A DNA stretch of 64,000 nucleotides, from the IMG/VR virus record IMGVR_UViG_3300009545_000018, positions 62,001 through 126,000 of that record; one strand, given 5' to 3'. Made by a program: the position numbers and the translations under genes. How positions within the stretch are numbered: the stretch's first letter is position 1; the number at the start of each line of letters is the position of its first letter. The notes below the pieces were generated by a model. It was given only the letters and a program-made list of their open reading frames with translations. It ran no database searches and was not told the origin of the DNA. Shown piece after piece: positions 36,156 to 53,782 of the stretch.

Positions 36156-36181
36156 ATCTATTAAAAATAACATATGTATTT

Positions 36182-36343
36182 ATGTTATTTGATAAAAGCA
36201 AACATGTTTTATTTAGATGTGAGTCTTGTGGAACAATTGTGTCTGTTGATTTTGAAGACGAAGATGATATTGAAAAGTTAGATGAAAATAAAATTGTATT
36301 AGAGTGCCCTTGTGGGGGAAGTTCCGAGATTTTAAGAAATTAA
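36182..36343 (+). CDS. small Zn-ribbon protein (below ORF-track cutoff)
   Basis: 53 aa, CESC...CPCG. Confidence 0.55.
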   Translation: MLFDKSKHVLFRCESCGTIVSVDFEDEDDIEKLDENKIVLECPCGGSSEILRN

Positions 36344-36433
36344 TTTTATAAATTATTAAGATATTGACAATATTGGCGAGCACCTTAAATTAGAGTGTGC
36401 CTAGATTATAAATTTACTATTACAGAAAATTAT

Positions 36434-36979
36434 ATGACTAATAACTCTTTCATAAATGAATTGTCTCAGTTGCGCCCTAATTCTACCTTTTTAGTCCTTA
36501 AAGGTTATCGAAATTCTTATTCTGAAGTTTCAGATTATAATATAGTTTTTAATGTTAATTATCAAAATGCATTGCAGAAAAGCATTAATTTTCTACAAAA
36601 TTATACGCCCCTTTCTTCTTTAGAAATTCAAGCAAAAGATGAATTAATTGCTAGTTATCAAAAATCTTTAACTAAAATGGAAACAATTCCATTTGAGGAA
36701 CTTGAAGATAATTATCTTCATTTTAAAGATGATAATGGAGATTATATTAAAGGGGTAAAGTATCATTTGAAATCTGATACTATTCATTTATATGGATTTG
36801 TGGTGCATAAAAAAATTATTATCCCAGGCAATTACCCCCAAGTTAATAAAAGGGAATTAACACTTGTTAAAGATAAATTATCTAAACTAACAATCGTATC
36901 AAAATTTAGACAATTTAAGATTGTACCAGAACAATTAGATTATATTAAAGTTAATAAATTAACAATATTTCCTGAATGA
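36434..36979 (+). CDS. hypothetical protein
   Basis: follows TTGACA promoter. Confidence 0.6.
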   Translation: MTNNSFINELSQLRPNSTFLVLKGYRNSYSEVSDYNIVFNVNYQNALQKSINFLQNYTPLSSLEIQAKDELIASYQKSLTKMETIPFEELEDNYLHFKDDNGDYIKGVKYHLKSDTIHLYGFVVHKKIIIPGNYPQVNKRELTLVKDKLSKLTIVSKFRQFKIVPEQLDYIKVNKLTIFPE

Positions 36980-37731
36980 GAACTATTAATAAATCTACAC
37001 TTGACTCTATTAAAATAAGGGTTGAAAAATTTCTTAATAAAAAAGATATTTTATTTTACGATTATGAAAATATGCGAGAAAATATTCTTTTTCTTATTAA
37101 AGAGAATGCTGTTCTTAAAGAAAAATTATTTGATTTAGAACAAGAATTGCCTGATGATAAACGTTGGGAAAACATTTTAGCTTCTAAATTAGAATTAGCA
37201 TTTTTAGAAAATGAAGCTAAAGAGTTCTTTGAAATAAATAATTCTATCAATAATCAAACATATACAATTATCATTCAGAAAAAGTTTGGGAAAACACCTA
37301 AACAACTTTTGAAATCTTCCGAGATTCGTCGTTTAAAAGCAATTAGAAAAATTGTAAGCTTACAAAAGCATATAATAGAATTACAAAAAACTTGCACCGA
37401 TTATAATAATCAAATTGGTGCTTTGACAAACATTGTAAGCAAACCTTTTCAAAATGATGAGTCTGTACGATTATCTCGACAAATTGTTGAGGCTGCGCTT
37501 CTTAAAGCACAACAATTAGCACATTCATTTAATACTCAGTTCATAAAATATGAAACTGTTAAATTACATAAATCATTTACAGCATCTTATTATGAAAGCT
37601 GGCGCCGTGCTTCTGACGCAGAAAGTCAAGTAGAAAAGTTGAAAAACGAAATTAGTAAAATAAAAAGAGTCATTTTGCAAAAGAAATATCCATTCTGTCG
37701 GATATATAAAGGAAGATTAAAGAAAAAATAA
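36976..37731 (+). CDS. coiled-coil hypothetical protein
   Basis: 251 aa. Confidence 0.55.
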   Translation: MRTINKSTLDSIKIRVEKFLNKKDILFYDYENMRENILFLIKENAVLKEKLFDLEQELPDDKRWENILASKLELAFLENEAKEFFEINNSINNQTYTIIIQKKFGKTPKQLLKSSEIRRLKAIRKIVSLQKHIIELQKTCTDYNNQIGALTNIVSKPFQNDESVRLSRQIVEAALLKAQQLAHSFNTQFIKYETVKLHKSFTASYYESWRRASDAESQVEKLKNEISKIKRVILQKKYPFCRIYKGRLKKK

Positions 37732-37823
37732 TTTTATTATTTGCAAAACCTTGACGGCAATATACAATGATTTAACTTGTTTGCCTCACAATTCGTTGAA
37801 TTTATTTCAAATATAAAAGGAGA

Positions 37824-39404
37824 TTGATTATGGTATCTAAAAATTTATTTAAGTCTACAGGTTCAGTTAAGAAAGCAATTAAACCAGTTAATGCTGTTAA
37901 TAATGCGGGCGGTGTGGCTTATACTATGGATGATAAGGCTGCCTTAGCGCAACTTGCCATGACTGGTTGTTTTAATGGAACTTATTATGTTGATGCTAAA
38001 GATCAACTTAATCAAGTTGTTGCTCTTGCTAATAAGCTTCCAGTAGAGTTCGTGGCAAAGTTAGCAGTATATGCTCGCCAAGAAGGTTTTATGAAGGATA
38101 TGCCTGCAGTATTAGCCGCAGTTGTTGCTAGCAAAGATACTGTTCTTTTATCCAAGATCTTTCCAAAGGTTATTGATAATCCAAAAATGGTTCGTAACTT
38201 TGTACAAGTTATTCGTTCTGGAGTAACAGGCAGAAAAAGTTTGGGAACCCGTCCTAAGAAATTAATTCAAAATTATTTGAATTCATTAACTGATGAGCAG
38301 TTGTTTAAGGCTGATGTAGGTAATAGCCCTTCATTACAAGATATTATTAAGTTAGCTCGTCCTAAGCCAGCTACTAAGAATCGCTCTGCTTTGTATGGTT
38401 ATTTGCTAGACAAGGAATATAATCCAGAAGACTTATGTTCCTTGGTTCAAGAGTTTGAATCTTTCAAAAAAGAAATGAGTTTGGATATTCCAAATGTTCC
38501 ATTTCAAATGTTAACAGCTTTGCCATTAACTGATAAGCATTGGAGCAAGATTGCTGAAAATGCAACCTGGAATCAAACCAGAATGAATTTAAATACTTTT
38601 GCTCGTCATAAGGTATTTGAAGATGCTACTACTTTAAACCTATTGGCTGAGAGATTAGCTGATTCTTCACAAATTGCAAAAGCAAAGGTATTCCCATATC
38701 AATTGTTTGCTGCATTTAAAAATGTAACTGCAGATGTTCCTAAGAAATTAACTAATGCTTTACAAAAAGCAGCGGATGCTTCGCTGGAAAATATTCCAGC
38801 TATTGAAGGTGAAGTTCACGTTTTAGTTGATGTATCAGGCAGCATGAGTAGCCCAGTCACTGGTAATCGTGGTTTTGTCACTAGTACTATGCGTTGTATT
38901 GATGTAGCAGCCTTAATGGCTTCTGCATTAATGCGCAAGAATGAAGATACTAAGGTATATCCATTTGATACTAGAGTTCATAATCATTCATTGAATCCAA
39001 TGGATTCAGTGATGACTAATGCGGCAACTCTTGCTGCATTTGGTGGTGGAGGAACTGATTGTGGTATGGCGTTAGAGAATTTAAATAAGCAGAAAGCCAA
39101 AGGCAATCTTGTTATTTATGTTTCTGATAATGAGTCTTGGGTAGATACTACTCCTAATTCCTATTATTCTCAAAGAGGTACTAAGGTAATGGAAGAGTGG
39201 AATAAATATAAAGCTCGTAATCCAAAAGCCAAATTGGTTTGTATTGATGTCACTCCTAATAAAACCACTCAAGCTCATAATAGAGAAGATATAATCAACA
39301 TTGCAGGATTTTCTGATCAAGTATTCGATGTTATTGCATTATTCCAAAAATTTGGCAATAATAAAGATCTTTGGGTTCAAACCATTGACTCAGTAGAAAT
39401 GTAA
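37824..39404 (+). CDS. rsr: Ro60 / TROVE-domain RNA-binding protein
   Basis: NNAGGVAY, LAQLAMTG.FNGTYY, YARQEGFMKDMP, MNLNTFARH, vWA DVSGSM, GGGGTDC, SDNESW. Confidence 0.93.
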   Translation: MIMVSKNLFKSTGSVKKAIKPVNAVNNAGGVAYTMDDKAALAQLAMTGCFNGTYYVDAKDQLNQVVALANKLPVEFVAKLAVYARQEGFMKDMPAVLAAVVASKDTVLLSKIFPKVIDNPKMVRNFVQVIRSGVTGRKSLGTRPKKLIQNYLNSLTDEQLFKADVGNSPSLQDIIKLARPKPATKNRSALYGYLLDKEYNPEDLCSLVQEFESFKKEMSLDIPNVPFQMLTALPLTDKHWSKIAENATWNQTRMNLNTFARHKVFEDATTLNLLAERLADSSQIAKAKVFPYQLFAAFKNVTADVPKKLTNALQKAADASLENIPAIEGEVHVLVDVSGSMSSPVTGNRGFVTSTMRCIDVAALMASALMRKNEDTKVYPFDTRVHNHSLNPMDSVMTNAATLAAFGGGGTDCGMALENLNKQKAKGNLVIYVSDNESWVDTTPNSYYSQRGTKVMEEWNKYKARNPKAKLVCIDVTPNKTTQAHNREDIINIAGFSDQVFDVIALFQKFGNNKDLWVQTIDSVEM

Positions 39405-39412
39405 GCAGGTAT

Positions 39413-39733
39413 ATGCAAATGAAAATTGTTGAGCATAGATTTGGAAAATATACAGCTCATGAGCCGCAAGAATGTTATTTTGCCGTAGTGGAACCAAATA
39501 TGGAAGATTATCCGCCCGTACTTATTTTTATTTCAGATAAAGAGACTTGGGATAAAAATAAATATACTGGGGATGTTAAGTTTGAAGACGGAATTCTTCC
39601 AGAAGAATTTGTGGAGTGGGTAGAGTCTGTTTATGAATCAAATTCTACGTCGCAAGAAATAAAAGAGGCTTTACTAAAAGTAGGCTTTACTTATTGTCAA
39701 GAGATGGAGTCTTGTATAGAAGAGTATAATTAA
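39413..39733 (+). CDS. acidic hypothetical protein, paralog of 41131-41436
   Basis: ECYF..EDYP..WDKN motif. Confidence 0.6.
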   Translation: MQMKIVEHRFGKYTAHEPQECYFAVVEPNMEDYPPVLIFISDKETWDKNKYTGDVKFEDGILPEEFVEWVESVYESNSTSQEIKEALLKVGFTYCQEMESCIEEYN

Positions 39734-39737
39734 ACTA

Positions 39738-40061
39738 ATGAAAACCATGTTGTTTGAAAAAACTATTAATTTAGTTAAAACTTTAAGAGAAACATTCACA
39801 ACTCGATGTTTACATAATCAAAAATTGCCCCTTTTTAGTTGGTTACATAGAAATTCTAGTAACTTTTCGAATGAAGAGTTTGAAGAGTTTTGGAAATTTT
39901 TAGTAATTTTATTTAAATATAAATATAAGGATATGAGCTTATTTTATGAAGCAGGAGAGTCTCCATTAGAAATGTTTGATTTTAGAGCAAACAAAGATCA
40001 AATCAATGACTTTATTTCTTTATTAGAAAATAAAATTAATAAATTGAAAGCTTTTATTTAA
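39738..40061 (+). CDS. small KAF-tag protein
   Basis: ends KLKAFI. Confidence 0.65.
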   Translation: MKTMLFEKTINLVKTLRETFTTRCLHNQKLPLFSWLHRNSSNFSNEEFEEFWKFLVILFKYKYKDMSLFYEAGESPLEMFDFRANKDQINDFISLLENKINKLKAFI

Positions 40062-40897
40062 TGATTAAAAGAAATGGTATTGAAATTAAGACTGCCCAAG
40101 CTCCAAATATAGTAGCAGCAAAAGATACTTTAAATATTCTTAAGAATAAAAATTATCTTGTTAAAGATAAGATCATAGATATTTCAGTGGCATTAGATAA
40201 TTCAATTAAAAATACTAAGTTATATTTGCCAGAAGATTGTTTTAATAGTAAAAATAATTTAATTAAACCTACTATAGAGGTAACAAATGAAACTACTACC
40301 TCTGCTGGGTTAAGATTATTAAATAGTGGTTTAGAAAATATTGTAGCTTTGAATTTTGCCTCAGCTAGAAATGTTGGGGGCGGATTTTTAGCGGGGGCAG
40401 TTGCCCAAGAAGAAGATTTGTGTCGGTGTTCTGGATTATATCTTTGTATTAAAAGCAAACCTATCTTTTATAATAAAAACATTTTATGTGATGATACTTT
40501 CTATACTAATCATATTATTTACTCACCCAATGTTCCTTTCTTTCGTAATGATAATCTAGATCTTTTAGAAGAGATATTCCACATTTCTATTATTTCTGCG
40601 CCCGCACCTAATGTTAGAGCTATGGAGAATGTTGATGAAGATAATTTAAGAAGCATATTAGAAATAAGGGCAGCTAGAATTTTACAGATTGCTATTGAAA
40701 ATAATCATGAAAATATTATCTTAGGAGCTTGGGGCTGTGGTGCTTTTGGTAATGATTCTAAAATGATAATTGAGGTTTTTCAAAAGGTATTAAATAGATA
40801 TCCTCATTTCAAACATGTTTGTTTTGCCGTCTTTGATAATAAAATAAATGCCCCTATTTTCAATGCATTTAAAGAAGCATTTGAAAATAATGAATGA
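40061..40897 (+). CDS. TIGR02452 / bacterial PARG-like ADP-ribose glycohydrolase
   Basis: LNFASARNVGGGF..GAVAQEEDLCRCS, LGAWGCGAFGND. Confidence 0.9.
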   Translation: MIKRNGIEIKTAQAPNIVAAKDTLNILKNKNYLVKDKIIDISVALDNSIKNTKLYLPEDCFNSKNNLIKPTIEVTNETTTSAGLRLLNSGLENIVALNFASARNVGGGFLAGAVAQEEDLCRCSGLYLCIKSKPIFYNKNILCDDTFYTNHIIYSPNVPFFRNDNLDLLEEIFHISIISAPAPNVRAMENVDEDNLRSILEIRAARILQIAIENNHENIILGAWGCGAFGNDSKMIIEVFQKVLNRYPHFKHVCFAVFDNKINAPIFNAFKEAFENNE

Positions 40898-41117
40898 TTT
40901 TAAAGTTGGAGATTTTGTTAAATTGGCACTTGTAGCTAAAGATGTTATGCCTTTAAATTATTCTCTGTATCAATTTAGTATTGGTAAAATTACTCATATA
41001 CAATATCATGTGATACAACAATGTAATTATATATCAGTGTGTTGGTCTAATGACACCAGAACTTATGTTTATATGGATAAACATTTAGTTAAAACAAATT
41101 TAAAAGCTTTCGTGTAA
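40890..41117 (+). CDS. small KAF-tag protein
   Basis: MNDFKVGD...NLKAFV. Confidence 0.65.
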   Translation: MNDFKVGDFVKLALVAKDVMPLNYSLYQFSIGKITHIQYHVIQQCNYISVCWSNDTRTYVYMDKHLVKTNLKAFV

Positions 41118-41130
41118 AGGAAATATTAAA

Positions 41131-41436
41131 ATGAAAATAGAAAATGATACAGAAATATATGTTCCAAATGAATGTTACTTTGGAATTGATGAAAGTGAAG
41201 ATTATCCAACGACCGTTCTTATTGTGAATAAAGATTATTGGGATAAAAATCAATGTACCAACGAATCTATTGGAGATCAATCGTTTGAATCAACTATTAT
41301 TCCAAATGATTTTTATAATGTTATGGAAGCCACTTGGGAAACCCAAATGCCTATGGAAAAAGCCAAACTAATTTTAGAGAAATCTGGTTTTACTTTTAAT
41401 AAATCATTATCTGAGTTTGTAGCAGATTATGTATGA
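41131..41436 (+). CDS. acidic hypothetical protein, paralog of 39413-39733
   Basis: ECYF..EDYP..WDKN motif. Confidence 0.6.
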   Translation: MKIENDTEIYVPNECYFGIDESEDYPTTVLIVNKDYWDKNQCTNESIGDQSFESTIIPNDFYNVMEATWETQMPMEKAKLILEKSGFTFNKSLSEFVADYV

Positions 41437-41720
41437 TACCACAAGAATTTCATAATAAAGCCATAGAAATACTTACAAAATGGAGGAAAACTCCTTGTAT
41501 GTATGCTTCTGATTATGAAGCTTGGATGACTATGGTTCTTGCAATTATGGAATTTGTTGATGTAAGAAATGAATCTCCTGGATTTTTTAAAAAACATATA
41601 GGTACTTATGGTAATTCATATCTAAATTTAGATAAGAAATTAGATGATGAATGGGCTCATAAAGTTATAGATGAAGCAATTAATATTATTAAAATAAATA
41701 AATTAAAAGCTTTTATTTAA
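41433..41720 (+). CDS. small KAF-tag protein
   Basis: ends KLKAFI. Confidence 0.65.
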   Translation: MIPQEFHNKAIEILTKWRKTPCMYASDYEAWMTMVLAIMEFVDVRNESPGFFKKHIGTYGNSYLNLDKKLDDEWAHKVIDEAINIIKINKLKAFI

Positions 41721-41780
41721 ATTTATTTTAAATAACTGAAGATATATTTTTTCTTGCACTTCATTGGCAAGAGGATATTT

Positions 41781-42470
41781 ATGACAAAAGAAAATTATAC
41801 ATTAGTAGGCGTAGTAATAGATCGTAGCGGGTCTATGAGTTCATTAGTTTCTGATACAATTGGTGGATTTAATTCCCTTTTAAAAGAACAAAAAAACGAG
41901 CCTGGACAAGCTTCTGTTAGTTTATGTTTATTTAGTACAGATTATAAACTTACTCATTATGATGATATTAATCAGGTTGAAGAATTAAATGAAATTTCTT
42001 ATAGACCAGGTGGTGGTACTGCACTATTAGATGCTTTGGGTACTACAATTGATGAGATTGGAGTTAGATTAGCTGCTAAAAATGAAGAAGATAGACCATC
42101 TAAAGTAATTATTATAGTGATTACTGATGGTCAGGAAAATTCATCTAGAAAATATTCTAAAAATAAAATTAAAGAAATGATTTCTCACCAAGAAGAAAAA
42201 TATAATTGGTCATTTACTTTTATTGGCGCCAATATGGATGCAGTTAGTGCTGGCGACTCTATTGGGTTTTCTGCCAATAATTCTTATAATTATTCCGCTT
42301 CCGCTGGTGGGACTCAAAAAGTATATGCTACCATGAATAATTCTTTAAAAAGAGCTAGAGTTATGGGAAGTGGCATGAAATCTAATGAATCCTTATTTAC
42401 TCCAGAAGAGGCGCAAAGCTTATTAGATTCTGATAAAAAGGTGAAAGATAATGCAGAAAATAAGTCATAA
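41781..42470 (+). CDS. vWA-domain protein
   Basis: IDRSGSM MIDAS, GGTALLDA, ITDGQENSS. Confidence 0.88.
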   Translation: MTKENYTLVGVVIDRSGSMSSLVSDTIGGFNSLLKEQKNEPGQASVSLCLFSTDYKLTHYDDINQVEELNEISYRPGGGTALLDALGTTIDEIGVRLAAKNEEDRPSKVIIIVITDGQENSSRKYSKNKIKEMISHQEEKYNWSFTFIGANMDAVSAGDSIGFSANNSYNYSASAGGTQKVYATMNNSLKRARVMGSGMKSNESLFTPEEAQSLLDSDKKVKDNAENKS

Positions 42471-42942
42471 AATATTAGTGCTATTTCTGTTGTGCTTTGG
42501 ATGTTCTTCTGTAACTTCTACTATAAAAGATCCTGTAACTACCAAACATTCTTTACAAGTAGATCGAATATTAAATAATCCAGAAGCACCACACCTGGCA
42601 GACCCTTCTTCAGAAGCAGAAAGAATTTGTATAAAACAAGGTGGCAGAATTATAGGTCTAAATCATAGTTCTTTTAATTGTCAATTAGATAATGAAACTA
42701 TTTTTTCTTATTATATAATACCCATTTCTTCAGATGAAAGTAAGATTGTTGGAATGCGAGTTTTCTTTCATCATGATAATGGTTCTTTATTACAACTTGC
42801 CACCCAAAAATTTGGACAACCTACTTTATGGAAAGATAATGTTGCTTCTTGGTATAATGAAAATAATGGAGTAGTTATGTCTATAGAATCTCATGATAAA
42901 ATCACTATTATCAGTTTTTATATTGCAGCGGCATTTATGTAA
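42451..42942 (+). CDS. putative lipoprotein
   Basis: signal peptide with lipobox-like CFGC. Confidence 0.55.
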   Translation: MQKISHKILVLFLLCFGCSSVTSTIKDPVTTKHSLQVDRILNNPEAPHLADPSSEAERICIKQGGRIIGLNHSSFNCQLDNETIFSYYIIPISSDESKIVGMRVFFHHDNGSLLQLATQKFGQPTLWKDNVASWYNENNGVVMSIESHDKITIISFYIAAAFM

Positions 42943-43139
42943 TGACAAGTGAAAAATGGGTCGCCGGAGAAAATAGTATTTTTTGGTTTCTGCCAGGAAC
43001 CGATCTGTTACATCGTATAGATGGTCCAGCTATAGAATATTCTCATGGTGTTAATTATTGGTACTATAATGGCATTCAAATTGACTGTCAATCTCAAGAA
43101 GAGTTCAATCGTAAAATTAAACTCTTAGCATTTTTATAG
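42942..43139 (+). CDS. HRIDGPA-repeat protein with KAF-like tag
   Basis: LHRIDGPA; ends KLLAFL. Confidence 0.7.
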   Translation: MTSEKWVAGENSIFWFLPGTDLLHRIDGPAIEYSHGVNYWYYNGIQIDCQSQEEFNRKIKLLAFL

Positions 43140-43147
43140 GGGTTTAT

Positions 43148-43867
43148 ATGGATCCAAAATGGAAAAATCCTGATTTATCATTAGGTGAGCGATGTGTAGC
43201 TTTTGCAGAAAATGAAATGAATAATGGAGTAAAAGAAGATAAACCTAATTCTTTTACTTCGCCCCGATTAAGAGAATACTTTGCCATTTGCACTCGTTTA
43301 GTTAATGGTAAAGAAGTTTCTATGAAAAGCTTTACTGCTGGTAATTGGTGTGCCGCTGGCGTCTCTTTTTGTTTACATGAAAGTCTATTACTTAATGAAA
43401 TGGCGCCTCATGGTTATCGTTTAGGTGTAGTTGAATTAGTAGCAGATATGCAACACAATAAAACTTATTTTACTATTGATGAGGTTCGCAAAGGACTATA
43501 TACTCTTAAAGTTGGCGATATTATTATTTTTGATAGAAGCAATCCTAATAAACCAGAAACTCAATGGTTTCGTCATGTTGGAAGAATTTATAGTGTAGAT
43601 GGTTTGGATTCTTTTAAATGTATCTCTGGTAATTCTGGGGGACAATGGAGAATTAGTTCTCATAATTTATCTCAAACTAATTTGTTAGGGTTTGGTTATT
43701 ATCCAGAAAAAGCGGCTCCTACAACAGTAAATCCAGTTCAACCAAGACAACCATTATCATTTGATAATGTTGATATTTTATCTCTTGCCCCCTTAGAAGA
43801 TTCTGGTAAATTTATTTCTCAAGGGTTTTTTGATAAATTTTTTAATTTGTTTGGAAATAAATCATGA
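43148..43867 (+). CDS. CHAP-like cysteine amidase / cell-wall hydrolase
   Basis: NWCAAGVS, GDIIIF, HVG, ISGN. Confidence 0.6.
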   Translation: MDPKWKNPDLSLGERCVAFAENEMNNGVKEDKPNSFTSPRLREYFAICTRLVNGKEVSMKSFTAGNWCAAGVSFCLHESLLLNEMAPHGYRLGVVELVADMQHNKTYFTIDEVRKGLYTLKVGDIIIFDRSNPNKPETQWFRHVGRIYSVDGLDSFKCISGNSGGQWRISSHNLSQTNLLGFGYYPEKAAPTTVNPVQPRQPLSFDNVDILSLAPLEDSGKFISQGFFDKFFNLFGNKS

Positions 43868-44160
43868 TTGATATTGAAGATATGGTTGAGCAATTGTATC
43901 AAGCTTCTTTAGATCAAACAAATGTTTCTAAAGAAAAAATGCGTTTAATATTAAATTTAGCATTACAAAAGCAATGTAATAATAATTTAGATATTATTTA
44001 TAAATATCTAAATCAATGGAGCGCAACTAAAGTATTAGGCTCTGAAGATAATGATCCGACCTCAAGATTAATTAAATTATTGTTCAGTTTAATCACTGAT
44101 GATATTAATGATGAAGTTAAAGAATATGGAAAGCTATCTGTTAATTATAATATAAAATAA
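43864..44160 (+). CDS. hypothetical protein
   Basis: ORF track. Confidence 0.5.
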   Translation: MIDIEDMVEQLYQASLDQTNVSKEKMRLILNLALQKQCNNNLDIIYKYLNQWSATKVLGSEDNDPTSRLIKLLFSLITDDINDEVKEYGKLSVNYNIK

Positions 44161-44167
44161 TATTGCG

Positions 44168-45170
44168 ATGGATCAAAAAGATTTAATAATACAAGAATTA
44201 CATAATATCATTTATAAATATGGCGTCAAAGCTTTAATGGAATTTGAGTCTAGGTTTCCGTGTGATCAATTAAGTTGTGTTAAAGTTCCATATAATCATA
44301 TTCCTAACAATTCAAAATTCATAGAGAGAAATTTTGGATATGGAATTTTTGTTTGGCAAGGAATTTCTTATAATGATGCATATTTATTTAGAATTCAATC
44401 ATATGAGAAATTTTGGATCGATTGGAATCAATTTAAACGTTATCTAGAATTATTAGCATTTACATGAAGACTAAAAAAGATATTGCAGATTTACTTCGAC
44501 CTATGCTTGAAAAATATGGAAGAGAATATCTTGTTAATTTTAACTTATTGATTAATAACGTTACTTGGGACGGCACTCTTAGTGAGTATGTTTCTATTCC
44601 TTTTAATAACATAAGTGAACACAGAGTTAATTGTAGTTCTTTTTTAGAGCTTAAACAACATATTAATAATTTAGAGATGAAAAGAACTTGGGGAAATTCG
44701 TGGACATATATTGAAGTTCCATCTGATTGTAATGATTTTTTTCATCTTAGAATTGATGGTGTTGAAAATTTTTACATTAAGTGGGAAAAATATCAAAGAT
44801 ACTTAAATTTGAAAGCTTTTATATAATGACAACAGAAGAAGATTTTAGAAAAAGTTTATCTTGTATTATTGAAAAATTTGGTCCAGAACATTTTAGTGTT
44901 ATTTTAACAATTGCACAAAATTCAAGCTTTTATTTTAAAAGTAAAAATATGTTATTAATACCATTTAAATCTAATTCTTCGTTTAAAAGAGTAAATGTTA
45001 AATATGAGGAGTGTGCCGCTGTTGTATGGAAAAATTATGCTAATCATAAATATTTTCCATTTCCTCCAGATTGTGATGATTGGTATTGTATGCTTGGTGA
45101 TTCTTTTGAAAGTATACTAACTCTGTATAATGTTGGTAGCAAAATGATAAAAATGAAAGCTTTTATATAA
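44168..45170 (+). CDS. array of three KAF-tag proteins (44168-44467, 44464-44826, 44826-45170)
   Basis: ends ELLAFT, NLKAFI, KMKAFI; mutually similar N-termini. Confidence 0.7.
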
Positions 45171-45664
45171 TGACAATTGGAATATTTGCTGGCAGTTTTG
45201 ATCCTATTACTTTAGGGCATTTAGATATTATAAATCGTAGTTTAACTTTTTTAGATAAATTAATAGTGTTAATAGCAGTTAACCCAAATAAGAAAACCAC
45301 TTTCTCTTTAAATAAAAGAAAATCTTTAATTATAGAGAGTCTTTTCGAAACATCAACGAGATCTGCAGATGTTATAGTGGATTCATATGATGGATTGGTT
45401 GTTAATTATGCTAAGTTACATGGAGCTTCAGTTTTGATTAGAGGTGTTCGTACCTCAACAGATTTTGAATATGAAACTAATTTAGCTAATGGTAATAGAT
45501 TATTAGCACCAGAGATTGAAACTGTCTTTATACCAACTCGTCCAGAATTATCTGTAGTATCTTCTTCCATGGCTAAAGAAATTAATAAATGGAATGGTGA
45601 TGTATCTAAATTAGTTACAGTTAAAGTTAAAAATGCTCTGAATGAAATTGTGAGTTTAAAATGA
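45170..45664 (+). CDS. coaD: phosphopantetheine adenylyltransferase
   Basis: AGSFDPITLGHLDII, IRGVR..DFEYE, VSSSMAKE. Confidence 0.93.
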   Translation: MTIGIFAGSFDPITLGHLDIINRSLTFLDKLIVLIAVNPNKKTTFSLNKRKSLIIESLFETSTRSADVIVDSYDGLVVNYAKLHGASVLIRGVRTSTDFEYETNLANGNRLLAPEIETVFIPTRPELSVVSSSMAKEINKWNGDVSKLVTVKVKNALNEIVSLK

Positions 45665-45912
45665 AAGTTAAAGAATTTAATAAAAGAGATAAAGCTATAG
45701 GTACTTTAGTACATACCACAGAGTATATTTATAGTGTTATTTACCCTTTCTTCCAACCAGGTTTTTGTGAAGGCGTAATTGATCTTATTAAAGATACTAA
45801 GTATGTACATATAATTGTTGATAATAATTTATCTAAAAATAAAATCGAAGCTATTGTTGAATCTGATTTTCAAGAAGAAAAAGAATATATTGTAATTGAA
45901 ACCGCCGATTAA
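45661..45912 (+). CDS. hypothetical protein
   Basis: ORF track. Confidence 0.5.
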   Translation: MKVKEFNKRDKAIGTLVHTTEYIYSVIYPFFQPGFCEGVIDLIKDTKYVHIIVDNNLSKNKIEAIVESDFQEEKEYIVIETAD

Positions 45913-45935
45913 TTTATTTTTTAAAATAACGGGCG

Positions 45936-45963
45936 TTGACAACAAGTAAGTCGGAGTTATAAT
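45936..45963 (+). promoter_or_regulatory. sigma70-like promoter
   Basis: TTGACA-N16-TATAAT. Confidence 0.75.
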
Positions 45964-45970
45964 ATGCCTT

Positions 45971-46159
45971 GTGCTAAGCAATGATGATTTATTGGGATTA
46001 GAGGAATCAGTAGCTATTAAGTTATTAAAAGATTCTAATAGTTCTTTTAGAATTACTAAGAGAGATAATCAGCATTATATTGTAACTCGAGACTTTAAAC
46101 CAGAAAGATTTAATTTAGAAATTAAAGATGCTTTAATTGTTAAAGTAACAAAAGGATAA
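45971..46159 (+). CDS. I78 peptidase-inhibitor-like small protein
   Basis: VTRDFKPERFNLEI resembles TMDYRxDRLNV motif. Confidence 0.5.
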   Translation: MLSNDDLLGLEESVAIKLLKDSNSSFRITKRDNQHYIVTRDFKPERFNLEIKDALIVKVTKG

Positions 46160-46212
46160 AAATCTAGGAATAACATGATATAAATAATACGTATTTGTTA
46201 TTTTAAGTTTAT

Positions 46213-46302
46213 GGGGAAGTAGCTCAGCCGGCCAGAGCGCTTTACTGTTTTATAAAACGAATAGTGAAGAGGTCGATGGTTCAAATCCATCCTTCCCCAC
46301 CA
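46213..46302 (+). tRNA. tRNA with 20-nt anticodon loop, identity uncertain
   Basis: GGGGAAG/CTTCCCC+ACCA, canonical D and T arms; anticodon arm extended to about 11 bp. Confidence 0.75.
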
Positions 46303-46374
46303 TGAATCAAATGCAGATAAGATTACATTTAACAGTTAATTAAAAAAGCATCTTATCAATAATTTGTTGATTCA
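46303..46374 (+). ncRNA. scaffold-family ncRNA copy A
   Basis: TGAATCAA/TTGATTCA, GATAAGAT/ATCTTATC, ATGC and TACATT motifs. Confidence 0.7.
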
Positions 46375-46380
46375 TTTAAT

Positions 46381-46464
46381 GCCGTAGTTGGACAGTGTGG
46401 TGAGTCCAAGACGCTGTAAACGTCCCGGTAAACTTTGTAGGTTCGATTCCTACCTGCGGCACCA
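46381..46464 (+). tRNA. tRNA-Tyr(GTA)
   Basis: loop CT-GTA-AA, long variable arm, ACCA. Confidence 0.9.
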
Positions 46465-46518
46465 AAAGATAAAGCAAAGTAATTTGCCTTGTTATTTGAC
46501 AACTTAATAGTTATGTAT

Positions 46519-46593
46519 TGGGTAGTAATGTCAACCTGGTAGACGCCTCCGTTTGGATCGGAGAAGTTGCGAGTTCAAATCCCGCCTACCCAA
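46519..46593 (+). tRNA. tRNA-Pro(TGG)
   Basis: CTCCG/CGGAG stem, TT-TGG-AT; no encoded CCA. Confidence 0.85.
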
Positions 46594-46653
46594 CAAATAT
46601 AAATGATTTCATATAGTTAGCAAAGCCAAAGTATTTGGTCAACAAAGTATGGT

Positions 46654-47622
46654 TTGAACTGTTATATATTCTGTATGATTGTCATACAGAAACGATCTTT
46701 TTCTTTAGAAGAGTTAAGAGAAATATTCAAAAGTTCATTGTCAAAGCAAGATGTTGCCATAAAGTTAGGTTTTACTTATAGTAATGGGAAAGTTTATAAA
46801 AAAATTGAGAAACTTTCTATTGAATATAATTTATCGACGGATCATTTTGATCCATTTTTAAGTCAAAGATTAAATACAAAATTTCCTAAAATAGAAAAAG
46901 AATGTCCTATATGCGGTAATTTATTTGAAACTAAACATGGACATCGTGATGAAAAAATTACTTGCTCAATATCATGCTCTAATACTTATTTTGCTCCTAG
47001 TAAACACACTGAATTATCAAATTTAAAAAGATCGTTAAAGCTTTTAAAAAATTCAAAAAATGAAACTGTCAATATAATAAAAGTTCGTAAAAAACGTAAA
47101 AAGAATTTTAAATTAAAAGCTGTTGTTTTATATATTAAGTCTTGTGAATTTTGTGATTATGATTTTGAAACTTATAATAAAAATAAAAGATTTTGCAATA
47201 TATCATGTCAAATCAAACATAATTGGGAAGATCCCAATTATCGTATTAATATTATAAATAAAGCTAATGAAAGAGTTACAAATGGAACCCATAATGGGTG
47301 GTCATCAAGATCAAAACTAAAACCTTCTTATGCTGAACAATATGTTATCAATCTTTTAGATGAGTTAAAAATAACAAATATTACTCGAGAATACAAAATT
47401 AACAAATGGTTTATTGATTTTGCTGATATAGATAGAAAATTAGCTTTAGAAATAGATGGTAAACAACATGAATTACCAGAACGTAAGGCTTCGGATCAAG
47501 TTAAAGATCAATATTTAAAAGATAATGGTTGGACCATTTTAAGAATAAAATGGAAAAAGATAACAGCAGAATTTAGAGAAGAATTAATAAAAGTTTTGCA
47601 AAATTTCACAAGGATCATATAA
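46654..47622 (+). CDS. homing endonuclease, Vsr/DUF559-like
   Basis: CPIC and CxxC Zn motifs, IDFAD..LALEIDGKQH..D..L..GWTILRIKW. Confidence 0.82.
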   Translation: MNCYIFCMIVIQKRSFSLEELREIFKSSLSKQDVAIKLGFTYSNGKVYKKIEKLSIEYNLSTDHFDPFLSQRLNTKFPKIEKECPICGNLFETKHGHRDEKITCSISCSNTYFAPSKHTELSNLKRSLKLLKNSKNETVNIIKVRKKRKKNFKLKAVVLYIKSCEFCDYDFETYNKNKRFCNISCQIKHNWEDPNYRINIINKANERVTNGTHNGWSSRSKLKPSYAEQYVINLLDELKITNITREYKINKWFIDFADIDRKLALEIDGKQHELPERKASDQVKDQYLKDNGWTILRIKWKKITAEFREELIKVLQNFTRII

Positions 47623-48026
47623 TGAATTTTAAAGATGCTCAAGACAAGTTTGATAATGAAATTAAATCAAAATCAACTATTGTAACACATAATAAAAATG
47701 CTGTAAATCAATATAGATGTTTCGACGCTGGTCTTGTCTTAAGAACGTTAAGACAACTATCTATTTCGAATCATATAGTTGATTTATATAATTTTTTTAC
47801 ATCACATCCATTTAAAATTAATAATACTTCAGATTTAGATAATTTAAGAAATAAAATTAAACTTGCAAACCAAGATTTGAGTAAATTTAGGGAGGTGGAG
47901 TTTAATTCTTATAAAGTAATAAATGAATCTTTGATTTTATCAATTGAAAAAGATATAGAATTTATTATTTCTTCTTTTAAAGAATTAGAAAAAGCTCTAC
48001 GTGATATACAAGATTCAGAAATTTAA
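47622..48026 (+). CDS. hypothetical protein
   Basis: ORF track. Confidence 0.5.
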   Translation: MNFKDAQDKFDNEIKSKSTIVTHNKNAVNQYRCFDAGLVLRTLRQLSISNHIVDLYNFFTSHPFKINNTSDLDNLRNKIKLANQDLSKFREVEFNSYKVINESLILSIEKDIEFIISSFKELEKALRDIQDSEI

Positions 48027-48053
48027 TATTACAACATTAAAGGAAAACACAAC

Positions 48054-48215
48054 ATGAACGAAATAACTGATTTAAAACCGTATTTAAAATATAACAATGG
48101 CGTGGTTACCGTCTTGAAGGTATTAGCCTTCCCATTAAACTGGGTAGCTGATGTATTCGAAAATTGGAGTCGCAAGCGCACACAAAAGAAATGTGAAAAG
48201 TGGCTATCTGAATAA
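48054..48215 (+). CDS. small hypothetical protein (53 aa)
   Basis: AAGGA SD, MNEITDLKPYL...WLSE. Confidence 0.5.
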   Translation: MNEITDLKPYLKYNNGVVTVLKVLAFPLNWVADVFENWSRKRTQKKCEKWLSE

Positions 48216-48319
48216 TTTTATACTACTAGAGTAGTATTCTTTTATCTATACTGGTTGAGTTACCCAGCTAAAATATAAACTTCCAGGCACGGTAGCCTGG
48301 TTAATCAAAACCGATTTAT

Positions 48320-48397
48320 AGGCTTCTAGCTTAACTTTTAGAGCAAGGGACATAAAGAGTCCCGTGGATCTTGGTGTAAATCCAAGGGAGCCTGCCA
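48320..48397 (+). tRNA. atypical tRNA-like RNA (loop AT-AAA-GA)
   Basis: AGGCTTC/GGAGCCT+GCCA, GGGAC/GTCCC, T-loop TGTAAAT, D-loop lacks GG. Confidence 0.65.
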
Positions 48398-48402
48398 TTT
48401 AT

Positions 48403-48484
48403 TGCGGGGTAGAGGAGTATGGTTATCTCACCAGCCTCATAAGCTGTGGTATACGTGGGTTCAAATCCCACCCTTCCGCAACCA
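48403..48484 (+). tRNA. tRNA-Met(CAT)
   Basis: CT-CAT-AA loop, TTCAAAT T-loop, ACCA; slightly irregular acceptor junction. Confidence 0.8.
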
Positions 48485-48552
48485 CTGGATGGTGGTTACC
48501 AAATCCGCAAAGGGGTATAGAAATATACTCGGAGGATTGAATCCACTATTAT

Positions 48553-48687
48553 GCAATTCTGGTATAATGGCATTACTGACTCTAAAAAGAGTATCACTTA
48601 CAAAGAAACCTGTGAGGCTACCAGGAAATTATTGTAAGAATAACGCCTTGCCTGGCGTAGATGTTGGTTCGATTCCAACGGATTGCA
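48553..48687 (+). ncRNA. tRNA-like RNA with multi-hairpin central insertion
   Basis: GCAATTC/GGATTGC, D arm, GTTGG-TTCGATT-CCAAC; about 80 nt of hairpins replace anticodon/variable arm. Confidence 0.6.
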
Positions 48688-48691
48688 TTAA

Positions 48692-48782
48692 GTGATGTTT
48701 GATAAGTAATCACGCCAGAAACATGATTTATCATGTTTGCCCTGATCAGCCTGGTAGTTAGGTGCAAATCCTAAGCATCACA
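48692..48782 (+). ncRNA. tRNA-like RNA with branched anticodon arm
   Basis: GTGATGT/GCATCAC, TTAGG-TGCAAAT-CCTAA, AAACATGA/TCATGTTT hairpin inside CCAG/CTGG. Confidence 0.55.
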
Positions 48783-48798
48783 ACAACTGAGTTTATAT

Positions 48799-49079
48799 GC
48801 CCGAATCCCTATATTGGTTAAGACATATAGACAATAGTCCGGTCTTAGGCTACCATTAAGGAGTAATCCTTTTAGAGACCACTGCTTCGGTGTGGGCAAA
48901 CCCGGCATTTAGGTGGAAAGCCTAATAAATTTTGCTTGATTAAATAGTTTCTTGCTACAAGATCAACGGTGTACAACGAATCTTGCTATTTAATTGGGAA
49001 GTCTTATAATTGTGGACTTGGTGAAACAGGTATAAGGCGAATTACGCTCGATATTGGATAAAACTAACATTGGGCGCCA
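48799..49079 (+). ncRNA. 281-nt structured RNA ending in GCCA
   Basis: GCCCGA/TTGGGC terminal stem plus GCCA; GTAA, cTTCGg, GCAA tetraloops. Confidence 0.55.
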
Positions 49080-49143
49080 TGAATCAAATCCGTATAGGAA
49101 TACATTCGGAAAAAATAAATCTTATACACTACTTGTTGATTCA
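49080..49143 (+). ncRNA. scaffold-family ncRNA copy B
   Basis: TGAATCAA/TTGATTCA, GTATAGGA/TCTTATAC, TACATT. Confidence 0.7.
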
Positions 49144-49148
49144 ATTAT

Positions 49149-49225
49149 TGTCGATTAGCTCATCGTTAGAGCGCCCGGCCGTAAGAGTCTGGAGGTACTA
49201 GGTTCAATTCCTAGATCGACAACCA
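49149..49225 (+). tRNA. tRNA with irregular anticodon arm (Thr-CGT-like, uncertain)
   Basis: TGTCGAT/ATCGACA+ACCA, good D and T arms; loop region CCGTAAGAGT. Confidence 0.65.
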
Positions 49226-49337
49226 TGTAACAAATGCCAGGGCAGCATTACATTTATTGGAATTAAATCCGATGAGGCTCGACTCCTCTTAAGGTCCGGT
49301 GACAGGCAAAACATGTTGCTCATTATTTGTTGTTACA
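49226..49337 (+). ncRNA. scaffold-family ncRNA copy C
   Basis: TGTAACAA/TTGTTACA, GGCAGCAT/ATGTTGCT, TACATT; cargo includes GAGG-CTCGACT-CCTC. Confidence 0.7.
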
Positions 49338-49465
49338 AATTTTTGACAGTATATCTAAACTGTATAGTGTGAGTTATGCGCAAGGGATAATTACCTAAGT
49401 AGCAACTATAGGTTTGCTAGTTAATCCTACACATGAATCAGAGTTAACCTGAAAACTAGCACAAT

Positions 49466-49539
49466 GCGAGTATGGCATAATGGTTGTGTCCCATGTTTCC
49501 AACTTGGTTATCTCAGTTCGATTCTGAGTACTCGCTCCA
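49466..49539 (+). tRNA. tRNA-Gly(TCC)
   Basis: GCGAGTA/TACTCGC, T73, TT-TCC-AA, CCA. Confidence 0.9.
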
Positions 49540-49591
49540 TGCCCACTAACTTAATTACATAAAAGTAAGGTTGTCGGGGCGCCAAATTTAC

Positions 49592-49666
49592 GTTCTGGTC
49601 GTCTAAATAATTAGGACATCTCCGCGAAAGGGGAAGATATTGGAGAATTACCAATCTGGAGCGCCA
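49592..49666 (+). ncRNA. non-canonical tRNA-like RNA
   Basis: GTTCTGG/CTGGAGC+GCCA, T-loop AGAATTA, anticodon loop GCGAAA. Confidence 0.6.
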
Positions 49667-49753
49667 TAAGTTAGTGGCTGGAAATCATTTAAGCGAGTTC
49701 AAATGCAATAACAGTCCGCCTAATTGCTCGTATATTAGGTAACTTAATTTTAT

Positions 49754-49830
49754 GCCCCTGTCGTCGTAAAAAGTCAGGACATCTCCAGTAATAGGAGAAG
49801 ATGTTGGAGAATTGCCAACTGGGGGTGCCA
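49754..49830 (+). ncRNA. non-canonical tRNA-like RNA, paralog of 49592-49666
   Basis: GCCCCTG/TGGGGGT+GCCA, TCTCC/GGAGA, T-loop AGAATTG. Confidence 0.6.
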
Positions 49831-50132
49831 AAGGCAAGTAAGGACCAGGAAGCCTTATGAGCTGCTGGTTTTTCATATAGGGAACTAGCCTGGTTAGTCC
49901 TATATGAGAACCAACCAATGTCTTTAAATAAAGAAATTTATATAAGGACACCATGATTAATTTGTGCAGCTGACTTATATTGGATTTCGCGATCTGATAT
50001 ATGAGTGCTGGAAAATACGGAAAGTTGGAAAACTGATGCACACCGTATAAGTTAACTAAATCACTAACTGTTATTATCTACGCGAATAGATAAAAACAAA
50101 GTAATTAGTTAATTATAATTAATCAAAAACTT

Positions 50133-50226
50133 TAGCAAATGCAGTAAGGATTACATTGGTTATAGTCAATCGAAAGATTGATGGTGGGTATCGATTCCCA
50201 CAGTATCTTTACAAAACTTGTTGCTA
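50133..50226 (+). ncRNA. scaffold-family ncRNA copy D
   Basis: TAGCAA/TTGCTA, GTAAGGAT/ATCTTTAC, TACATT; cargo GNRA hairpin plus GTGGG-TATCGATT-CCCAC. Confidence 0.7.
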
Positions 50227-50230
50227 TTAT

Positions 50231-50367
50231 TCCGAGGTACGTCTAATGGTAAGACACGCGGCTGTGGGAACTATAGGTTAATAATAAGTCCCGTTCGATT
50301 CGGGCAGTTCCAAGAATAACCGCGCGGTGGTAACACTTTGTAGGTTCGAGTCCTACCCTCGGAGCCA
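50231..50367 (+). tRNA. tRNA-Asn(GTT)-like gene with 51-nt insertion in the anticodon
   Basis: TCCGAGG/CCTCGGA+GCCA; CGCGG-CTGT[50266-50316]TAA-CCGCG. Confidence 0.75.
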
Positions 50368-50392
50368 TTATATTAAATAAAAGGAAAGTACT

Positions 50393-50554
50393 ATGCAAGT
50401 TCAAATACATCTTTACAATCAATCCAATCCTATTGTGTTGGAACATGTAACTAATGCTTATCAAAAAGGTGATTTTTATTGTGTTATGTTTGCTAGTAAA
50501 CTAGTTCAAAAGTTTCCAATTCAACATATATTTAGAATAATAGAAACTCCTTAA
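50393..50554 (+). CDS. small hypothetical protein (53 aa)
   Basis: AAGGA SD, MQVQIHLYNQSNPI... Confidence 0.55.
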   Translation: MQVQIHLYNQSNPIVLEHVTNAYQKGDFYCVMFASKLVQKFPIQHIFRIIETP

Positions 50555-53476: not shown

Positions 53477-53516
53477 ATTTATCAAGCAATAATATTAAGT
53501 TATTATTGCTTTGACT

Positions 53517-53586
53517 ATGGACAAATTAGATAAGGATTACATTTTATTGGAAAAACAAACATCTTTGTCAACTACTTGTTGTCCAT
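53517..53586 (+). ncRNA. scaffold-family ncRNA copy E
   Basis: ATGGACAA/TTGTCCAT, GATAAGGAT/ATCTTTGTC, TACATT. Confidence 0.7.
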
Positions 53587-53589
53587 TAT

Positions 53590-53666
53590 GGTACATAGGC
53601 GAATCTAGTGAACGCAAAACCCTGAAGAGGTTTGGAGCCCAGAGCGTAACTTGGGATGTACCACCA
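53590..53666 (+). tRNA. tRNA-Phe(GAA) with atypical T-loop
   Basis: GGTACAT/ATGTACC+ACCA, AAACC-CTGAAGA-GGTTT, T-loop AGCGTAAC. Confidence 0.8.
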
Positions 53667-53782
53667 AGAAAGGTAGCGCCTTTCAGCCTGCTCACATGGA
53701 CGAAACTGTGACGTTCCCTCTTGGCTGTATAGCTCAAGTAGTAAAAGGGACAGCCGGTTCACCTGGTTGGAAACGGTGATAA

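Follow-up and report, generated by a model that had tools for sequence, protein, structure and literature searches.

The occurrence of short hairpins ending in NCCA among the tRNA genes of a phage raises the question of whether they are RNA elements under selection and, if so, what such small structures could do. The sequence comes from a 447,763-bp IMG/VR virus record assembled from a rhizosphere metagenome, with a GC content of 31% and 37 tRNA genes predicted by ARAGORN; the window analyzed here is the 64,000-nucleotide stretch that corresponds to bases 62001-126000 of this record. The initial annotation described three plain hairpins with NCCA ends (here named h1, h2 and h3), the last two in tandem, and proposed that they act as decoys for toxins of the tRNA acceptor end or as amino-acid carriers outside the ribosome. 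The three sequences were all found where they had been reported, h2 and h3 follow each other with only the dinucleotide AT between them, and the location among tRNAs was corroborated, with a tRNA-Gly before h1, two tRNA-like units (tl1 and tl2) between h1 and h2, and an insert-bearing tRNA after h3. The features of the region are the following:

48216-50392, plus strand: RNA island, gene-free, about 1.9-2.3 kb, containing all the hairpin and tRNA-like units
49046-49079, plus strand: type A minihelix of 34 nt, absent from the initial annotation
49466-49539, plus strand: tRNA-Gly(UCC) with an encoded CCA, detected by ARAGORN and Rfam (53.2 bits)
49541-49584, plus strand: h1, a weak hairpin followed by GCCA, 1 nt past tRNA-Gly
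49592-49666, plus strand: tl1, a cloverleaf tRNA-like unit between h1 and h2, ending in GCCA
49754-49830, plus strand: tl2, a cloverleaf paralog of tl1 ending in GCCA, immediately 5' of the pre hairpin
49831-49865, plus strand: the "pre" hairpin, directly 5' of h2, with a covarying stem and the invariant loop GACCAGGAA
49866-49917, plus strand: h2, a long hairpin (variable base of 7 bp, bulge of 1 nt, invariant upper part) followed by ACCA
49920-49953, plus strand: h3, a 34-nt type B minihelix with 12-13 bp, a GNRA tetraloop and ACCA
49954-50230, plus strand: conserved non-coding RNA stretch from h3 to the next tRNA, with no Rfam match
50231-50367, plus strand: tRNA with a 54-nt insert in the anticodon loop (Rfam tRNA, 39.3 bits) and a GCCA end, closing the island

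The RNA island is the largest gene-free stretch of the genome and has a GC content of ~40%, as compared with 25-28% in the flanking genes. A GC-rich patch in an AT-rich genome is a usual sign of structured RNA. A second assembly (a Logan contig from the same DNA run) matches the island stretch without differences, which is not independent support since it derives from the same sample as the IMG/VR assembly. A run search located the phage sequence in its source DNA metagenome alone among public runs, and in no RNA run. Another GC-rich patch (40-48% GC) lies at 53500-53780 of the window, beneath small predicted ORFs; a 77-nt unit there (53590-53666), with a perfect 7-bp terminal stem and ACCA, may be a hidden tRNA-like gene.

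Two of the three reported hairpins are stable. h2 folds into a 21-bp interrupted hairpin followed by ACCA (-21.6 kcal/mol, z -4.45, with 0/200 shuffles equally stable), and h3 has a stem of 7 and 5 bp interrupted by an A.A mismatch, capped by GAAA and followed by ACCA (z -4.42, 0/200 shuffles as stable), so that its size is that of the tRNA acceptor/T-arm stack. The complementary strands of both fold worse (z -0.44 for the minus strand of h3) because G.U pairs are in use. A scan for 7-bp stems followed by NCCA uncovered the additional unit at 49046-49079, in which 7 bp and 4 bp flank a 1x1 mismatch beneath a 6-nt loop, with GCCA at the end (z -3.18). In contrast, h1 has a 4-bp closing stem with internal loops (z -1.46, 19/200 shuffles as good), and BLAST found no homolog of it in the relatives described below; the description as acceptor-like NCCA hairpins therefore holds for h2 and h3, and has to be withdrawn for h1. 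The ends of h1 (GCCC... and ...GGGGCGCCA) match those of the tl family, its middle aligns poorly with them, and its 5' half is also complementary to 49667-49678. Judging from this alignment, h1 is probably a decayed tl tRNA-like copy that inherited the terminal pairing and GCCA.

Two upstream features are shared with related loci on metagenomic contigs:

37824-39404, plus strand: Ro60/Rsr homolog, 10.5 kb upstream of the island, with several genes between
45170-45664: CoaD-like gene, with homologs on metagenomic contigs at 63-74% identity

Contigs with a CoaD homolog and readable DNA show the order Ro60, CoaD-like gene, tRNAs, endonuclease gene and gene-free island, and this Ro60-to-island synteny is kept in at least eight contigs. 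The relatives L012 and L014 come from independent metagenomes, with ~67-69% identity in a protein encoded nearby, and BLAST shows that both conserve most of the island, piecewise and rearranged. The Ro60 protein is of the TROVE-vWA type and was found in the window as well as in relatives L012, L016, L017, L021-L043 and L047-L049. Its synteny partners include a nucleoside deoxyribosyltransferase-like gene, PARG, GIY-YIG, the CoaD-like gene and the tRNA island, joined by an RNA ligase in some relatives, and in many of the more distant Ro60 phages large tRNA arrays flank the Ro60 gene. The endonuclease gene within the tRNA/RNA island of the window (46654-47622) is of the DUF559/MTES_1575 type, and the islands of relatives carry LAGLIDADG, HNH or GIY-YIG endonucleases (L012 9516-10421; L017 10778-11464 and 16017-16541). 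The order of the RNA units varies among relatives, which suggests endonuclease-driven shuffling.

Homologs of h2 are located at L014 8957-9008 and L012 13998-14051, both with ACCA kept, and those of h3 at L014 9011-9044 (13 bp, GAGA loop) and L012 14054-14088 (GAAA loop). The stretch comprising tl2, pre, h2, h3 and the downstream RNA (window 49750-50156) has 77-81% identity to L012 and L014, and each of the three copies independently folds into the same three hairpins. In the alignment of pre, h2 and h3, 97% of the cells are paired, as compared with 33-49% when partners are slid, and seven pairs have changes on both sides, such as U.G to G.U at h2 position 6 and C-G to U-A in h3. Double changes affect three pairs of helix 1 of pre, and two compensatory ones fall in the basal helix of h2. 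The upper 14 pairs of h2 (34 nt) are nearly invariant, which points to sequence-specific recognition. The ACCA tails of h2 and h3 and the AT linker are invariant while the stems vary. It was also observed that the pre loop GACCAGGAA (49843-49851) is complementary over 6 nt to the apical CCTGGT of h2 (49889-49894), both being invariant, and the two loops may form a kissing interaction tying both hairpins.

The type A unit has homologs at L012 11157-11190 and L016 11184-11217, both exactly 34 nt long and with a 12-bp helix. Double changes were observed at 7/12 pairs, 97% of the cells pair, 0/500 shuffles match this, and the apical TTGG-GTTAAA-CTGA is kept in the homologs. A further 34-nt unit of the h3 type, with 13 bp, a GAAA loop and ACCA, is present at L017 13257-13290. 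Two recurrent 34-nt architectures can thus be distinguished, type A with 12 bp and a 6-nt loop and type B with 13 bp and a GNRA loop (4/4 units), each followed by NCCA. Length is held at 34-35 nt among homologs, and, at the DNA level, all copies and homologs have NCCA immediately 3' of the helix. The covariation counts are small because each element has just 3-4 related homologs; the compensating base changes in related phages indicate that the hairpins are real RNA elements, and on the evidence of these alignments h2, h3 and the 49046-49079 unit are selected RNA structures. Conservation in related phages, which had been put forward as a check of the proposal, was thus found for h2 and h3, with compensatory changes, but not for h1.

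The frequency of such structures in the rest of the genome was also considered. A lax definition of a hairpin plus NCCA gives 68 and 82 matches on the two strands and is so common genome-wide that one such hairpin carries little weight. When a 7-bp base, 11 bp or more and small loops were required ahead of NCCA (strict rule), 39 matches remained over 895,526 strand-bases (both strands), a rate from which 0.08 would be expected in the 1.9-kb island; three were found there, a ~36-fold enrichment with a Poisson estimate of ~1e-4. NCCA follows 1.6% of the strict hairpins genome-wide and 3 of ~5 distinct ones in the island.

Additional searches covered a wider set of sequences. An IMG/VR search with two small flanking ORFs and the CoaD-like protein returned no close relatives, a 134-aa neighbour protein had no relative among 5.8 billion proteins, and a DNA pattern for the tl family had no matches in IMG/VR. 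The h2 core pattern matched the source contig alone among metagenome contigs; BLAST of the block against five Ro60-phage records recovered nothing beyond the three training loci, and a covariance model of pre, h2 and h3 (R1) run on 27 sources recovered nothing beyond the three closest genomes. Three IMG/VR matches to the type A core pattern, without the flanking helix or tRNAs, were dismissed as chance. A strict scan of 23 loci of distant Ro60 phages gave mostly chance matches in GC-rich DNA, with no clear tRNA-adjacent enrichment. Sequence-unrelated minihelix-like units were observed outside the closest clade in L021 and L051. The one exception in the strict scan was an unrelated GC-rich Ro60-encoding phage (L043), where, 7 nt past tRNA-Lys in a 42-tRNA array, positions 4772-4807 form a textbook minihelix with a 7-bp acceptor stem, a 5-bp stem, a TTCGAGT T loop and ACCA.

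The hairpins lie among several non-canonical tRNA-like genes. tl1 has a 6-nt "anticodon" loop, the T loop AGAATTA and a D loop without GG; neither ARAGORN nor Rfam called it at default thresholds, and ARAGORN called it (49592-49666) once thresholds were lowered to 80%. The tl family, made up of tl1, tl2 and homologs at L014 8723-8795, L012 13881-13962 and L017 ~13375-13457, escapes tRNA finders at default thresholds; all its members end in GCCA, with T loop AGAATTN (TTAAAAT in L017), no D-loop GG and odd anticodon loops. The 54-nt insert of the tRNA that closes the island holds a T-arm-like hairpin with a TTCGATT loop, and since this insert-bearing tRNA is kept in relatives (L014 9363-9524; L017 13669-13813) the insert is not a random disruption. 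Another tRNA-like gene with an 82-84% conserved body (window 48320-48397; L012 10687-10764; L014 7430-7507) has a non-canonical T loop and varies in its anticodon loop from relative to relative (AAA, UCG, or a loop of 8 nt); ordinary decoding is an unlikely role for it. L012 and L014 also hold truncated tRNA-like units of 57-62 nt.

Conserved repeated spacer hairpins were located directly 3' of CCA ends (window 46303-46380, 49080-49148 and 49226-49340; L012 11428-11496 and 11871-11990; L014 8073-8140 and 8595-8712). One type reads TGAATCAAAT...TTGATTCA, and a longer type, TGTAACAAATGCC...TTTGTTGTTACA, encloses a T-arm-like hairpin. A small hairpin with an ACCA end of its own uses the 3' ACCA of tRNA-Met as its 5' strand (48480-48501; L012 10910-10931); it shows a pairing-preserving C-to-T change in L012 and is absent in L014. 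At genome 212881-213035 (outside the window) and window 46213-46302, two tRNAs with the anticodon CUA and one to which ARAGORN gave a 4-nt anticodon were noted; the CUA anticodons suggest that part of the genome may decode TAG as a residue.

Known classes of elements do not account for the hairpins. They had no match to the tRNA family RF00005 with cmscan up to E = 10, nor with default ARAGORN. Rfam detected only tRNAs in the island (E <=10) and in 36000-48300 (E <=1), with no Y RNA, tmRNA or intron; the tmRNA calls made by ARAGORN at a lowered threshold were taken as noise. The Ro60-binding motif GNCGAA(N)G is absent from 46160-50400, and its sole matches elsewhere fall within coding regions. 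A stack of ~12 bp, as in the acceptor/T-arm half of tRNA, is present in h3 (13 bp in L014) and in the 49046 unit; the interrupted 21 bp of h2 and the 4-bp closing stem of h1 do not form one. A 7-nt T loop carrying T54-Psi55-C56 was seen in none of the hairpins, whose loops are GAAA/GAGA in type B, ATAAAA/GTTAAA in type A, and D-arm-like GCCTGGT or CTG in h2. Intrinsic terminators were rejected, since the hairpins precede ACCA and then AT or TGA and none appeared in a terminator scan. A minus-strand ORF (49685-50041) was rejected as a gene, as its reading frame is broken in L012: it has 118 aa in the window and 95 aa in L014, and is split into 65, 61 and 48 aa in L012. Indels of +2 and +1 nt occur within h2 and h3 of the relatives. 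A reading as attP-type tRNA fragments was likewise rejected. h2, h3 and the 49046-49079 unit are therefore not tRNAs, terminators, protein-coding sequences or members of known Rfam families.

The sequence context of the hairpins is that of tRNA genes. CCA is encoded in 30 of the 37 phage tRNAs, and ~30/37 are preceded by A (-2) and then T or C (-1). This A-Y leader is common to five of the six non-tRNA CCA-ended units in the window (h1, h3, the 49046 unit, tl1 and tl2), unlike h2, whose leader is GC; homologs of the hairpins share it, and a CCA-W trailer is common to hairpins and true tRNAs. No plus-strand terminator with a U tract was found inside the island by the terminator scan, and a perfect sigma-70 consensus (TTGACA-16-TATAAT) lies at 45936-45963, upstream of the first tRNA. 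The lack of an internal terminator, the shared leader and the upstream promoter fit one long precursor that would need cutting. The phage encodes a full CCA tRNA nucleotidyltransferase (genome 294541-295788, minus strand; 321 bits, curated cut-off 290) and a truncated second member of this family (genome 266470-267243), and the sole synthetase found in the window is a class IIb LysRS.

The reading that we rank first, at a probability of about one in two, is that h2, h3 and the 49046-49079 unit are processed in the manner of tRNAs and act in trans as mimics of the acceptor end. They would be small-RNA genes that copy the acceptor/T-arm half of tRNA (minihelix), transcribed together with the island's tRNAs and tRNA-like RNAs and released by RNase P cutting at the 5' side of the helix (+1). 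The encoded N-CCA would give a free 3' end, maintained by the phage CCA-adding enzyme and shielding the RNA against exonucleases. It is known that minihelices can be substrates of CCA-adding enzyme and some synthetases. The target of selection would be the shape (12-13 bp of helix with a compact loop, and a 4-nt NCCA) rather than the stem sequence, and it is for this reason that the units are read as putatively stable mimics. These could occupy a protein that recognizes acceptor ends, whether from the host (an enzyme or toxin that targets the CCA end) or from the phage (an RNA-repair factor, with Ro60 or a nucleotidyltransferase as candidates); the original idea of decoys for acceptor-end toxins is a possible reading, compatible with the data. 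The mimic is placed first given the conserved loop identity, length and upper part of h2, and the tandem of h2 and h3. Against it, h2 is about twice as long as the acceptor/T-arm stack, and a stoichiometric decoy would face competition from a very large tRNA pool. Since the minihelices have no T loop, it is uncertain whether enzymes that read the tRNA elbow would recognize them.

The strong rival, which we hold to be possible but distinctly less probable than the mimic, is that the minihelices are processing punctuation, that is, cis-acting RNase P entry sites for cutting up the long transcript of the island, which would fix where neighbouring non-tRNA RNAs end on their 3' side and trim the trailers of tRNAs lying upstream, with the released hairpins as functionless by-products. 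It is established that RNase P accepts hairpins with a 3' RCCA as minimal substrates. The RNA 3' end ATAAGGCG just before 49046 is conserved, and it is followed by the minihelix in the window and in L012 and directly by a full tRNA, filling the same slot, in L014; any RNase P substrate seems to suffice there, and the L014 arrangement fits a mere RNase P site as well as it fits a mimic. Several units also begin 1-3 nt past another CCA end (h3 after h2, and the L016 11184 unit after tRNA-Pro), and stem sequence is freely variable. However, one site would do where h2 and h3 stand in tandem, and a cutting signal has no need of the conserved loop identity (GNRA; TTGG-GTTAAA-CTGA), of the conserved upper 34 nt of h2 or of a length fixed at 34 nt. 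Decay products are an improbable source of the same units: internal deletions could be expected to leave remnants of tRNA and tRNA-like genes, devoid of selected function, in an island that is rearranged among relatives and carries homing-endonuclease genes, the truncated 57-62-nt units of L012 and L014 are in keeping with this, and h1, which aligns with the tl family at both ends, looks like such a remnant. Debris would lose its pairing, whereas in h2, h3 and type A pairing survives seven double substitutions per alignment and CCA is invariant at a divergence that has altered the stems, so this origin is disfavoured for them.

It is also conceivable, although we consider it unlikely, that a single larger folded RNA (~49831-49953 or longer), possibly a tRNA-like Ro60 partner, has pre, h2 and h3 as its domains, in place of independent minihelices. 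They are inherited as one block at 77-81% identity, the ACCAGG of the invariant pre loop is complementary to the invariant apical CCUGGU of h2, and a Ro60 homolog is encoded on the same strand, 10.5 kb upstream, with its synteny conserved. Bacterial Ro60 partners have tRNA-like modules and can be CCA-tailed (PMC4201824; PMC7824862). This is opposed by the lack of a Rfam Y RNA match and of GNCGAA(N)G in the island, by a loop-loop pair that shows no covariation because both loops are invariant, by internal ACCA-AT-G junctions that resemble tRNA-type cut sites, and by type A and type B units that stand alone in L016 and L017. The amino-acid carriers of the initial annotation, charged by a synthetase and donating their amino acid outside the ribosome, are disfavoured and rank as the least probable of the alternatives. 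The NCCA end, the acceptor-like helix and the LysRS encoded by the phage speak for them, and some synthetases charge minihelices in vitro. Nevertheless, acceptor pairs 1-7 and the discriminator vary between homologs (type A position 73 is G or A), the first pair in L016 is C1-G72, G3:U70 is absent, and a class IIb LysRS reads the anticodon and is thus anticodon-dependent; this free variation, the missing G3:U70 and the anticodon-reading enzyme argue against a fixed aminoacylation identity.

A bolder extension of the mimic reading, which we put forward tentatively and regard as doubtful, is that a clade of huge Ro60 phages deploys 34-nt CCA-tailed RNAs either as acceptor-end decoys against host defence or as guide or gate RNAs for its own enzymes. 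The putative targets of the decoys would be CapRel-type CCA-end pyrophosphokinases and MenT/AbiE-type nucleotidyltransferase toxins; as guides or gates, the RNAs would serve the phage Ro60 and the truncated CCA-adding-like enzyme. If either were true, these would be the first natural minihelix genes. Minihelices have been known for over 30 years as laboratory constructs and as a hypothetical tRNA ancestor, and no report of natural conserved minihelix genes, phage ones included, was found in the literature searched. If the RNAs are made, tRNA maturation (RNase P and the CCA end) would serve phages as a general cassette for making and stabilizing small non-decoding RNAs, and the units would be a concrete candidate in the tRNA-centred arms race of phage and bacterial defence; their conserved neighbourhood includes Ro60, RNA ligase, PARG and CCA-adding enzyme. 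For annotation, it is relevant that tRNA finders and Rfam are blind to the minihelices and to the adjacent non-canonical tRNA-like genes.

Several known systems resemble the units in part. Prokaryotic tRNA gene fragments and pseudo-tRNAs mostly retain the 3' part and lack the 5' acceptor strand, and their pairing is unselected. The phage units are likewise partial tRNA-like sequences adjoining tRNA genes, but they have both strands, which covary, and h1 alone resembles debris. The tRNA cluster of phage T4 contains the stable non-tRNA RNAs species 1 and 2 (rnaC and rnaD), which exceed 100 nt; the units described here would resemble them in being small stable RNAs co-transcribed and co-processed with phage tRNAs. 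In eukaryotes, RNase P and RNase Z release mascRNA and menRNA from MALAT1 and NEAT1, and these RNAs are then CCA-tailed. They share with the phage units the borrowing of tRNA processing for a small non-decoding CCA-ended RNA, which is here a prediction, and differ in being ~60-nt cloverleaf-shaped RNAs with CCA added post-transcriptionally, whereas the phage units are plain hairpins with an encoded CCA in a tRNA operon.

Closer to the phage setting, YrlA of M. smegmatis is a Ro60-bound RNA that is cut by RNase P and CCA-tailed in vivo (PMC4201824), and bacterial Ro60 partner RNAs bear tRNA-like modules (PMC7824862). The island resembles YrlA-type Y RNAs in having non-tRNA RNAs with tRNA-like parts, and a Ro60 gene lies in conserved synteny with it, several genes away; unlike YrlA, its hairpins have no Ro60-binding motif, T-arm/D-arm module or Rfam match, lie 10.5 kb from that gene and are far smaller, at 34-52 nt. 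The nearest counterpart in form is the synthetic tRNA minihelix, an acceptor stem on a T stem-loop followed by NCCA, which serves as a minimal substrate of RNase P, CCA-adding enzyme and some aminoacyl-tRNA synthetases. The phage units differ from it in being natural, genome-encoded and conserved, known here from their sequence, in having a GNRA or 6-nt loop instead of a 7-nt T loop, and, for h2, in being about twice as long; they share with it a 12-13-bp helix with a 7-bp acceptor-like base, a single-stranded N-CCA and a nearly equal length, 34 nt as compared with ~35 nt.
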